Origin: Chara braunii
Lineage: Eukaryota; Plantae; Charophyceae
Assembly: GCA_003427395.1 (NCBI GenBank)
Contig: BFEA01000012.1
Coordinates: 3,126,622 to 3,177,504, forward strand
DNA length: 50,883 nt
Reading direction: 5' to 3'
Both the position numbers and the translations under genes were made by a program. Of the stretch, positions 3,541-14,015 are shown one piece after another. How positions within the stretch are numbered: position 1 is the stretch's first letter; the number at the start of each line of letters is the position of its first letter. Under the pieces are notes generated by a model, which did not search any database, was not told the DNA's origin, and worked only from the letters and a program-made list of their open reading frames with translations.

Positions 3541-3605
3541 TGTATAATGCAGCTCAAGAAAGAAATACTGCAGCTTAAACTGCGTGTGACAACAATAGAG
3601 AAATG
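3541..3605 (+). CDS. Tentative upstream exon of FLASH-like gene (CIMQLKKEILQLKLRVTTIEK)
   Basis: AG..GT bounded heptad-like peptide, phase compatible with 3731-3758. The acceptor is weak, and ATG 3547 is an alternative start. Confidence 0.4.
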
Positions 3606-3730
3606 GTAATCCACATTGTGTACAATGGTATCAGCTCAGCTTCCAAAATGACCGTAGCTGGCAGGCTGGGAACTTGGAACATAAGAATGAATGCCTTGGC
3701 AATTTGGGAGGGCATCTGGGTCCTGCCCAG

Positions 3731-3758
3731 CAGAGAAATCGAGGAGAAAATCTCCTGG
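3731..3758 (+). CDS. Tentative micro-exon of FLASH-like gene (C-REIEEKISW)
   Basis: cctgcccag| ... |gtcggt. It bridges phase 2 to phase 0 between the neighbouring exons. Confidence 0.4.
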
Positions 3759-3938
3759 GTCGGTTTCTCGGGGGGAAGAACTATGGGACCGATTGAGGTC
3801 TCTGCGAAACTGGGTCTAATGGAAGTGAAGTGTGTGTGGATGCGCATGTGCGATTTCGATAAATTAAAGAGCAAGAGAAGATGGAACATTCGAGGTTGGT
3901 GGTGTTGATAGTGACACTGTTATCTGCGTATCTGATTC

Positions 3939-3985
<47 letters not shown>

Positions 3986-4029
3986 NCCCCCCCCCCCCCC
4001 CCCTCTCCCCCTCCCGCTTCCCCTGACAG

Positions 4030-4104
4030 CTGAAGGAGAAAATAGAGACGTTGAACAAGGAAAAGAAGGAAGCTTTACAGCAAGTGGCGGAGCTGAAAGG
4101 AAAG
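4030..4104 (+). CDS. Exon of FLASH/CASP8AP2 N-terminal-domain-like coiled-coil protein (LKEKIETLNKEKKEALQQVAELKGK)
   Basis: Poly-C tract plus ctgacag acceptor and AAG|gtatgg donor; 75 nt, phase 0/0; strong coiled-coil pattern. Confidence 0.7.
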
Positions 4105-4705
4105 GTATGGATTGTAATTTTTGCAAAGCATGGAAATATTATTTGAGAGGAGAGGGCTCGGAAAGCAGCGCTTGTTCAGAAAGGATGTGTTGGCAAGGGA
4201 TAGGGGACTGGTGAAGAATGAGAGGGTGTGGAGGCTCTTTGAAAAAAAAAGCCCTTGTTTGCGTTGAAACAGGTTGAATGAAACAGATTGGCCACAGAGG
4301 AAATTGAGGGAGGACAATTGTTATCCAAGAGGATTCAAGCTCTCAATCTGTTCATCAGTAGTTACATGTGTGTGTATTGTTCAGCCACCGGCCCCTACTG
4401 TGATGTACATCTATGTCTAAGTTGGGAAATTCAACGTGTGATGATATGCAAATTTGGGGTTTTCCCCATCTGACTGGACCTAGAGATAATCCAGTGGGGC
4501 CTGCCCCTAAGACAGATCGATTTGTCACCAGAAGCTTGTGTTAGTGAGGGAGTCGGATGCCGAAATAGAGAGCGAATGGAATAGCGACCAGCAGGCTGTT
4601 CCCAGCACATGAGTTAGAAGAAGAGGGATCGGGAGGTGTGTGTGTGTGTGTGTGTGGAGGGATGGGGGGAGGTGTGTGTGTATGTGTGTGTGGAGGGATC
4701 GGGGG

Positions 4706-4750
<45 letters not shown>

Positions 4751-9721: not shown

Positions 9722-10374
9722 AAATCATGGAGTATATTGTTTGTGGTGCCTTGAATTGTTGCACCCTTGCGGGCAGCCCTGTCCCAATCACTGACTACAT
9801 GGACTGACTGGTGGAGTCTGGTGCTAGGTAGTGTGCGGACCAGTTTGATTCGGCGGGTGGGCCTGAATTNCGGGATTGGATGCATTTCTCCTGCCCCAAT
9901 TTTTTTTTTTTTTTTTTTTTTTTTGCAACAGGTAATTTTNTTCTGCATGGGTAGTAATAACCGTAGTATGTTTATTGCGATTTTGTATTTCTGCATGACT
10001 GGAACAGCCGATCTGTGACGATCAAAGGGTAGATACAACGACTTGCAATGATGCCTTCGGCGCTGTTGTCCATCTGCCTCTGGGTGTAAGCATCTTCTTT
10101 TTTTTTTTTTCGAAACAAAAGGCTCCAATCTATTCATGGGGAGCATAACGTGCGGAGAAACGGGCTCAGCGTCCCTTCTGTACAACATTGTTGGAGTCTG
10201 AAGGTCTGTTAAGAGTCCTAAGACTGAGAGCATGAGAAAACAGGTATGAGCATGAGACATATTAAGCATGACCACAGTGCTCAACTTGTGGCGAATGAGC
10301 TTCTCATCTCAGTCAGTTAAATGCAGATGAGCATGTGCTGGCAAGCTGGCCCACAAGCCCGTCATCAATAGATA

Positions 10375-10702
10375 TGTACTCTGGAGTTGGACAATAGATA
10401 TGAAGTATTATGAACTCTGGAGTTGAGAATAGGCATATGGACTCTGAAGTTTAGAATAGGCATATGAACTCTGGAGTTGAGAATAGGCATATGGACTCTG
10501 GAGTTTGAGAATAGGCATATGGACTCAGCTAGAAAAATGCACAAAAGGAGTCGAGAATAGGCATATGTGCTCTGGAGTTGAGAATAGGCATATGGACTCT
10601 GGAGTTGAGAAGAGGCATATGGACTCTGGAGTTGGGAATAGGCATATGGACTCTGGAGTTGAGAATAGGCATATGGACTCTGGAGTTGGAGAATAGGCAT
10701 AG
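10375..10702. repeat. 27-bp minisatellite (GGACTCTGGAGTTGAGAATAGGCATAT)n
   Basis: About 11 imperfect head-to-tail copies. Confidence 0.9.
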
Positions 10703-11021
10703 TCATTGAGGAGGGGGAGAGTGCATATTCAATGCGAGGGAGGTGGATATTCATTGAGAAGGGGGAGAGTGTACGTTCAGTGGCTGGAAATTTCGGATGG
10801 CTGCAAGATCTGCCCACAGCTAGAAAAATGCACAAAAGGGGTGGTTGGTTGTTTTAGGGCTCTTGTGTGTGTACTGTTGTTGCAGACAGGCTTGGTGTTG
10901 CTGGAGGGCGTTGCATTTGTCCTGTTAAGCATGCAGTGCCGTGCACCCTTGGCTAATGACTGTCGTTCGTGGTGTGCTTTTTCTCGTGGTCGTGATTTCG
11001 ATCTCTTGTGTTTTTGACCAG

Positions 11022-11077
11022 ACAGCGCAGTTAGAAATCAAGCGGAAAGATATGTTCATCAAGGAGCTTCGAGAGGA
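11022..11077 (+). CDS. Exon of FLASH-like gene (TAQLEIKRKDMFIKELRE)
   Basis: tttttgaccag| ... GA|gtaagt; aligns to FLASH [16 protein letters not shown] (recalled). Confidence 0.85.
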
Positions 11078-11648
11078 GTAAGTTTGGTTCCACTAAAGTG
11101 TGTTTGTGTGGCTTTCCATGGAGAGGATAATACGGAGCAAAGCAGAAGGGTGTGATTCTGAAGGAATGCTGATTTATTTTTTGAAAATTTTTCATAAAAT
11201 CAATCCATGTGTTGAATCCAGTCTGTACCAGCAGATCTCTGGCTTTTCCGCGCTCGCACTGCAGTTCTTTCTTTGGCCTTATGGTAGAAGCTTGAATGAG
11301 GACTCTTTTCGGTTCTCCAACAGAATTAGTAATAGCCTGAATGAACTGAAGAGTGCTCTCTCCTGACAACACAGACTAATGCAGGGTCTTGGTCAACGGT
11401 CGTGGTCAACGGTCTTGGTCAATGCTGAAATGAGGACCCTTCCGTTCTGAGTGAGAATTAGTAATAGCCTGAGAAAGACGCTGCTATTATTCATTCTCAC
11501 TGAGAACGGAACAAAGCAGGAGCTTGGATCAGAAGGTGTAGAAGAATGCAGGGTCTGTGTTGTCAGGAGAGAGAGCACTCTTCAGTTCTCCAACAGAATT
11601 AGTAATAGCCTGAAAATGAGGGCTCGTTGGGACTCACAAAATGCCAAG

Positions 11649-11740
<92 letters not shown>

Positions 11741-13987
11741 NNNNNNNNNNNNNNNNNNNNNNNNNNNNNNNNNNNNNNNNNNNNNNNNNNNNNNNNNNNN
11801 NNNNNNNNNNNNNNNNNNNNNNNNNNNNNNNNNNNNNNNNNNNNNNNNNNNNNNNNNNNNNNNNNNNNNNNNNNNNNNNNNNNNNNNNNNNNNNNNNNNN
11901 NNNNNNNNNNNNNNNNNNNNNNNNNNNNNNNNNNNNNNNCATCTATAGTGTAGAGGCTGTGCCATGGATGGTTCAATGTGGACCCAAACAGCCTGCCGTT
12001 TGGTATACGCACAGACCACTCCAGAGTTCTGCACTTAGGGCTTTAGATCTTAAATCACGATTGCTCCCGAAGCGAAGTTACTGAACCGGTGCATTATTCC
12101 GAGCCCAGGGAGCAAGAATCCGCACAATTTCGCTGCCAGAACTTTAATTGTTCAGATATCTTCTCCTGAAAAGATCAGCAACCACCAAAGTTGGTGCTCT
12201 CTAAATTTTGTGCGTTGCTGCCGACTCCCCGCAGCCCGTAGGCCACCCGCCCTGCAGCTGGCTGCAAGAGTCCACCAAGACTATCAAATTGCAACGTGGG
12301 CGGTGATGGTTTGTTTGAGGACAAGATTTTGAGCCCACGTGACGGATCTACATTGTGTGCTCCTCCCACCCATCCAAACGAAGGCGAAAACTACCGTCTT
12401 CACCCGAATATAATGCCCGGTCATTATCACTGTATCTAGAGTGGAAGCTGCACCAAATACAGTTATAATGACCGGGCATTCTATTCGGGTGAAGACGGTA
12501 GTTCAATTTTGCATGATGTGCACAGAAGATGAATGTAACACTCTGTCTCTCTGTCTCTCTGTTTGCGCGCGTGCATACTATATGAGAGGGATGTTCACAG
12601 CTTCCAGCGGCAAGAGCAATGGGGTGTTGATTGGATTGGGCGTCGGGACAATCTAGGTTGAACTGCTGGTAGTCTCCAGGCAGGCTTTGCTGATAGGGCT
12701 TACTGTGAATGACGATAGTACAGTCAAAAGCTAAGGGCTGTTTGGGTGCTTGTAGCATCGTACCCCTCCTTTGCCAGGTAAGGGTGGATCGGGACCTCGT
12801 GCACCCCCTCAGGCCCGTCCCCTTCCCCTTGCCCTCATAGGATAGGAAGTGTGTGAGCCAAAAAAAAAGGCTGGCATATGCATTGTCAATGAAAGAAAAT
12901 CCAACAAGTTTCCTGCCAGTCTGGCTTTGTACACCCCCACCCTGTGCCTATTGGCTGTGAAATCCCCGCTACCGTCCCCTGGAAAGAGGCAGCCTCTTGT
13001 CATTGTAGCTGTACTCGAGCTGGGAAAATTATACGCTGGATATAGCTGTGGTGTGGGACAGAAGCCAGTGTTAGGCAAGCAGGAGGGGGGCATATGGAAG
13101 AAGCTAGAAGGACCAGGGGGCCAGAAAGCCTGTGTTATGCAGATGCATTATGCAGATGCATCATCAAAGTCATCTGTCGAGTTGCGGTTACCCTCGTTGT
13201 TATTACTATTTTTAGTATTTTAGTCATTCCTCCTTGCTATCCACTAGGCGGAAGGGGGAAGAATTGTGTGGGTGTATACCCCTATTTTTTCTTACCAGGG
13301 GGAAGGGGACTAATTGCACAGTGGTGTGTACCCAGACTGTCCTCCGACCTCGTACTGTCTATTAGGGGGAACAAATGGTGTGGGAGTTTGCAGGTGAGAT
13401 GAGTACAGGGCAAAGAAGGGTGATAGGCTGGAGTGCCGATAGGGAGATGCAACTCCCCTTCTTTGTCAATCGTTTCCATTATCACAGACTGTTATACGGC
13501 CGAGGTCACCAGCTCGTTTCCGTCTGGCTGCGGAGCGGAGTTTGATCCTGGCTGGTTTTCCCAGTTGGACAGTATACGAGCGTAGTAACCAGGCCAGGGG
13601 ATGATCACCTGGATGTTGGTCTCTGCATGGACCTACCTGCGGAGTATCTCTCATAGATGTCGCACGAACTACAGTGTAAGTCCTTGCTGCTGCAACTGTG
13701 CTGGGGTGGGCTGTATGTCATGAACTCCGGGTCACAGTTGCAGTGGTAAAGGCATCTGGCTTATACTGCCGAGGTCACCGGTTTGATTCCGTCCGGCTGC
13801 GACGTTTGATCCTGGCTGCTGTTTGCAGTTGGACAAGTGCGGCTTGCTCGGTACTTCAGAAAGTGCTCAGTGCATTCGGCAACCCAGTTTACCAGCTCTG
13901 TGAGTGTTTGAGACCTCAACTGCACTGCAGCGCTCTCGTTCAGAGTCTTACTGTTGGCTTGTGTTGGTGCTTTTGGTGCATTCACAG

Positions 13988-14015
13988 AAATCAGAGATTG
14001 AAAGAGCGAAGATGA
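13988..14015 (+). CDS. Probable terminal coding exon of FLASH-like gene (E-NQRLKERR*)
   Basis: ttcacag acceptor; the phase-2 join completes GAA and continues the coiled coil to TGA at 14013-14015. Confidence 0.6.

Follow-up and report, generated by a model that had tools for sequence, protein, structure and literature searches.

In human FLASH (CASP8AP2), an LDLY motif (residues 55-58) binds the histone cleavage complex and residues 100-139 bind Lsm11, with L118/I119 being essential (PMC5636114); the fragment 1-139 supports cleavage, and residues 52-139 recruit the cleavage complex in vitro (PMC7026596). FLASH outside animals has already been reported: a preprint presenting candidates from a PANTHER PTHR15489 screen describes FLASH, LSM10/11 and SLBP as widespread outside animals, and LSM10, LSM11, SLBP and histone stem-loops as present in green algae and land plants (10.64898/2026.10.14.759114). 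In Chlamydomonas, most histone mRNAs are non-polyadenylated (PMC8226298). Here we describe CBR_g8605, a protein of 118 residues annotated in Chara braunii as 'hypothetical protein', four of whose five coding exons lie within a 50,883-nt stretch of contig BFEA01000012.1 (assembly GCA_003427395.1; hereafter the window), and which, on the evidence of sequence and intron positions, is an orthologue of the FLASH N-terminal domain (NTD) and not a generic coiled coil. The original prediction, made from the letters of the window alone, had proposed a hidden gene for a FLASH-like N-terminal domain in a probable green-lineage genome. The genome is indeed that of Chara, and the homology is supported by database sequence, profile and intron positions; the gene, however, was already annotated, and only its identity lacked a name.

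The main text of the preprint does not name Chara braunii or mention LDLY, and describes neither N-terminal-only proteins nor shared introns; its filter is framed around CDD cd12202, and CBR_g8605 may be contained in its supplementary tables (10.64898/2026.10.14.759114). The orthologue of Trebouxia sp. (KAL3142590.1, 108 residues) already bears the GenBank name 'CASP8 associated protein 2', which is an annotation label only; it has the stand-alone architecture and the motifs of the Chara protein, as do short orthologues in Pyramimonas, Tetraselmis, Discosporangium, Tieghemostelium and Oscarella. Our literature search, which covered the preprint's main text, found no description of a stand-alone FLASH form or of the shared introns, and no functional study of these short orthologues. 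Vertebrate FLASH differs from the Chara protein in its length of about 2,000 residues, in the C-terminal Myb-like domain that Pfam detects in carp (PF21227; among the orthologues scanned, in carp only) and not in Chara, in the first position of LDLY, which is T in Chara, and in having no counterpart to an extra Chara intron inside the KTA motif. What the human/vertebrate NTD (residues 51-137; 6ANO, 6AOZ, 6AP0) has in common with it are the DLY motif, a long coiled coil of matching heptad register and the Lsm11-binding stretch N.S..[FI]KTA..EI.RKD.

A protein search with the open frame around 9064-9123 returned a single match, CBR_g8605, whose locus on BFEA01000012.1 (L001, the numbering of which we use for positions before the window) shows no difference from the window over 24,015 bases. 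When the protein is compared with the PDB, the top matches are the human FLASH NTD crystals 6AOZ, 6AP0 and 6ANO (E 6e-6, the next match standing at 0.16), and the alignment spans Chara residues 22-111, from DLY to RKD. The 16 identities in 36 positions counted originally do hold, without a gap, between Chara 72-107 and residues 101-136 of the human FLASH PDB chain. A word-index search with the protein retrieves only itself; an exhaustive search yields 63 matches, carp CASP8AP2 being found among the relatives, and the match to AHNAK (P0002) is a repeat artefact, which we left out of the family. The 50-row family profile finds FLASH in the PDB at 3e-17, and a profile built from 20 green-lineage proteins, without any animal row, finds it at E 6.5e-15, with the next match at 0.003; these are specific FLASH matches, not merely generic coiled coils. 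The nearest ESM Atlas cluster is C8AP2 (0.95).

Judged from the alignment, both functional elements of FLASH are conserved in CBR_g8605. Chara TDLYDDL (22-28) aligns with human LDLYEEI, such that DLY (D23-L24-Y25) is kept and the first L is not, and the distance from DLY to KTA is 67 in Chara and 63 in carp. The human Lsm11-binding stretch (100-137, with L118/I119 and R128-K129-D130) is matched by I89/F90 and R99-K100-D101 of a putative Chara equivalent. The near-invariant columns of 50 relatives coincide with these two functional patches, namely Y25/D27/L28 and N85/S87/T92/A93/E96/R99/K100. The predicted model, of a monomer only, has a short helix with DLY at 13-24, a low-confidence linker and one confident long helix at 39-108 (predicted local distance difference test, pLDDT, about 98 for 51-109), as do the human crystals, and its hydrophobic a/d positions match the human ones by register.

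The gene is laid out as follows, with coordinates of the window unless L001 is named.

L001:10001-10138, coding exon 1 of the annotated model, 138 nt, residues 1-46, with DLY at 23-25
1..4029, + strand, 3' part of intron 1, whose position (-45, phase 0) is common to plants, Trebouxia, the brown alga and carp
4030..4104, + strand, coding exon 2, 75 nt, residues 47-71, first half of the coiled coil; its carp FLASH counterpart is equally long
9064..9123, + strand, coding exon 3, 60 nt, residues 72-91, start of the predicted Lsm11-binding region, with I89/F90 aligned to human L118/I119
11022..11077, + strand, coding exon 4, 56 nt, residues 92-110, with the TA..EI.RKD motif
11741..11939, no strand, assembly gap of 199 N within the last intron, after an AG microsatellite
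13988..14015, + strand, terminal coding exon 5, residues 110-118 and stop, the least secure part of the model (annotation and weak homology)

The four exons originally called with confidence correspond exactly to exons 2-5 in the GenBank model. All four have AG acceptors and the first three have GT donors, and their phases of 0, 0 and 2 bear out the in-phase joining that had been proposed. A position matrix made from 49 relatives, Chara excluded, places exons 2, 3 and 4 each first among 40,000-50,000 six-frame windows, with exons 3 and 4 scoring 40 bits against at most 3 bits for the next-best place, a test that is partly circular in that the 49 relatives had been chosen with the Chara protein. 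The statement that the window holds no LDLY was correct only because exon 1, which carries TDLYDDL, lies about 8.1-8.3 kb upstream of the window, beyond a gap of 7,110 N; since this true exon 1 supplies the DLY motif, the whole functional N-terminal domain is present. Two further exons that had been suggested tentatively, 3541-3605 and 3731-3758, are not supported: they are absent from the annotated model, their polypyrimidine tracts are weaker (9-10/20 versus 12-17/20), and they would insert 31 codons at a junction that is joined directly in relatives.

Intron positions, which we count in codons from the T of KTA together with the phase, argue from the gene sequences for common descent of the Chara gene and the FLASH genes. 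We judged orthology by these positions rather than by a tree, as some 90 residues of coiled coil carry little signal. The Chara introns stand at -45, -20 and 0 (all phase 0) and at +18 (phase 2). All four recur in moss, fern and lycophyte genes and also in Klebsormidium, where the first is at -38 across a 7-residue deletion. In carp CASP8AP2 three of the four (-45, -20 and +18) match exactly, so that exons of 75 and 116 nt correspond to 75 and 60+56 nt in Chara. In the sponge Oscarella, introns stand at -20 and +18, and the first is at -38; both -45 and -20 are present in Trebouxia and in the brown alga Discosporangium; and the dictyostelid Tieghemostelium has -20, which is thus common to all short-form genes mapped. 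The phase-2 donor of exon 4 (11077) is conserved in streptophytes, carp and sponge, and the intron inside KTA (position 0) is seen, among the genes examined, only in streptophytes. These shared positions support joining exon 1 to exon 2 across the large gap, and they speak against the tentative exons.

Relatives were found in chlorophytes, prasinophytes, Klebsormidium, Mesotaenium, moss, lycophyte, ferns, conifer, brown alga, dictyostelid and animals, and ESM Atlas clusters point to oomycetes as further carriers; the named matches include no flowering plant or yeast, which is not a test of absence. Short stand-alone forms of 86-130 residues occur in chlorophytes, brown alga, dictyostelid and sponge, and about half of the length-unbiased matches with both motifs end no more than 25 residues from the +18 position. 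Some of the metagenomic short forms may be truncated gene calls; the short forms also include annotated genes of 86-116 residues and transcript-derived open reading frames (ORFs) of 99-129 residues, two of them marked complete. Land-plant orthologues carry extra tails of 150-300 residues, which are unrelated and belong to no Pfam family at cut-off. The mini form is thus widespread and, as we infer from its occurrence rather than from a rooted tree, probably ancestral, with the huge vertebrate protein being derived from it; the large C-terminal part and the Myb-like domain of vertebrate FLASH would then probably be later additions to an ancestral adaptor of about 100 residues. Two side observations belong here. 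In Oscarella lobularis the mini-FLASH (86 residues, L008:1501-1917) is named 'bicaudal D-like' and ends, as the Chara gene does, in a very small exon that follows the +18 intron. The orthologue adjoins a PTPLA (PF04387) gene in Trebouxia and in two further genomes (loci L005, L011 and L012), which we read as local synteny and not as a sign of function.

Two alternatives concern what the protein is and where it ends. That it is a generic coiled coil resembling FLASH by chance would agree with Pfam, which offers only sub-threshold coiled-coil families for the full 118 residues, with the non-specific outcome of fold searches, and with the single exons, which retrieve nothing specific from Pfam and no FLASH from the PDB because stretches of 19-25 residues are too short. 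Yet FLASH is separated from the next PDB match by about 12 orders of magnitude, a second motif is present at conserved spacing, and three introns in common with carp FLASH would arise about once in a million under uniform placement (4 / C(270,3)); the green-only profile and the intron positions already refute this reading, to which we give next to no credence. It is also conceivable that the FLASH homology is right and the early stop an artefact of annotation or assembly, with a longer last exon concealed by a gap (11741-11939 or 14280-15137) or reached through another acceptor. Orthologues of Klebsormidium, Mesotaenium and land plants do extend 76-299 residues beyond the +18 intron, and homology by itself does not single out acceptor 13988, which ranks 6th of 184. 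The GenBank model nevertheless uses this acceptor, retention of the last intron would give an immediate stop, and no frame of the window DNA downstream matches the tail of any relative (best E 0.12), the plant tails being themselves dissimilar to each other except for P0016 and its close relative P0012. An equally short last exon follows the same intron in the sponge, and the many relatives that end near +18, transcript-derived ORFs included, point the same way, so that we hold an artefact to be quite improbable. As the gap at 11741-11939 is within the last intron, its length leaves the reading frame unaffected; continuity from exon 4 to exon 5 across it draws on the annotation, the conserved phase-2 donor at 11077 and a weak likeness to moss (ENQRLK versus ENLRLK). 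Of the original proposal that the protein stops right after the Lsm11-binding helix, the stand-alone architecture is supported; the last exon depends on annotation and weak homology. About 200 nt past the stop codon, near 14220, lies a strong donor-like site that could mark an intron of the 3' untranslated region.

As to function, we consider it likely that CBR_g8605, a Chara FLASH/CASP8AP2 that consists of little more than the N-terminal domain, acts as a dimeric adaptor linking Lsm11 to the CPSF73/symplekin complex for histone mRNA. By analogy with the human protein, two copies would form a parallel coiled coil, the C-terminal half of which (72-107) would bind a single Lsm11, by its extended N-terminus, within a U7-type Sm ring, while the DLY helix would dock the symplekin/CPSF100/CPSF73 cleavage complex; the docked complex may then cut replication-dependent histone pre-mRNA after the stem-loop to give non-polyadenylated mRNA. 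The U7-like pathway that this implies for Chara is one that we infer from analogy, and several points weigh against it. Lsm10, Lsm11, SLBP and U7 were not identified in Chara, for which no genome-wide search was made. According to the preprint, fungi have no broadly conserved recognizable U7, the sole U7 candidate named outside animals is that of Rozella, and streptophyte-algal hairpins are divergent (10.64898/2026.10.14.759114). The first LDLY position, besides being T in Chara, is mostly D/E in relatives and varies in animals too. Foldseek finds nothing and VIA-align only generic long helices, these searches being uninformative for a single helix. As for the window itself, Rfam finds no U7 in it and there is no canonical 16-nt histone stem-loop, the only histone gene there being an intron-containing variant. 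The next annotated gene on the same strand encodes a multi-exon histone-fold protein of 266 residues (from 17566; L001:35823-42272, running past the locus), an adjacency that we read as coincidence. Some of the same points would suit a true FLASH orthologue that still connects the CPSF73 complex with an Sm/Lsm ring or some other partner, for other RNAs or without a U7-type guide, histone processing being no longer its job in Chara: besides the divergent hairpins, the preprint describes the SLBP, stem-loop and U7 parts as decoupled in plants and fungi (10.64898/2026.10.14.759114), and the land-plant orthologues have gained their unrelated tails. We think such a change of job unlikely, given that lineages very distant from one another have conserved the DLY patch along with the Lsm11-binding patch.

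The surroundings of the gene are rich in repeats, among them microsatellites and fragments of long interspersed nuclear elements (LINEs). LINE-like retrotransposon fragments, recognised by eye from the ORF list, comprise a 3' fragment within intron 2 (5657-7084, +) and two broken copies of greater length (19525-23279, -, and 31287-38579, +). A dispersed repeat of 200-230 nt has three copies around exon 3 (7416-7649, 8632-8863 and 9480-9690, all +; 79-84% identity) and a partial inverted copy at 18145-18247. In the intron after exon 3, 41 nt from the exon and behind an A-run, there is a full-length U6 small nuclear RNA-like copy (9165-9281, +; 65 bits against an Rfam gathering threshold of 44), which, with small insertions near the ACAGAGA box and the internal stem-loop, is probably a pseudogene; another U6-like stretch, further decayed and missed by Rfam, lies shortly before exon 3 (about 8880-8965, +) and has an alignment score of 55 against a random maximum of 50. 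A sequence like a type III hammerhead, scoring 40 bits (E 4.7e-6) and below the gathering threshold, occurs in a repeat at 6-61 and 50361-50440, the two being 96% identical. Finally, L001 positions of about 9380-9413, beside a gap at 9449, resemble a Nextera/Tn5 mate-pair junction adapter that the assembly has retained.

Taken together, these findings suggest that a small FLASH adaptor predates animals and persists in algae and in many land plants. Outside animals, U7 RNA has hardly been recognised, which bears on how algae such as Chlamydomonas produce non-polyadenylated histone mRNA. Here, a natural protein corresponds to the minimal active fragment of FLASH. It keeps both docking motifs, and its introns are common to animals, amoebozoa, brown algae and plants; this speaks for an Lsm11-FLASH-CPSF73 link that is ancestral among eukaryotes. 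The analysis also supplies a profile for a family that has no Pfam model and is mostly annotated as hypothetical, and it offers a single small gene for knockout or for use as bait in a moss, fern or green alga. We would go further only tentatively, with somewhat less than even confidence, in proposing that a mini-FLASH of about 100 residues already served as adaptor in the last eukaryotic common ancestor, and that the protein of Chara and other plants continues to act together with Lsm10/Lsm11 and a guide RNA too diverged for U7 models, or with a different guide or none. If this is true, the mini-FLASH protein would be a direct bait for the plant and algal equivalent of U7, and possibly also for targets other than histone mRNA.

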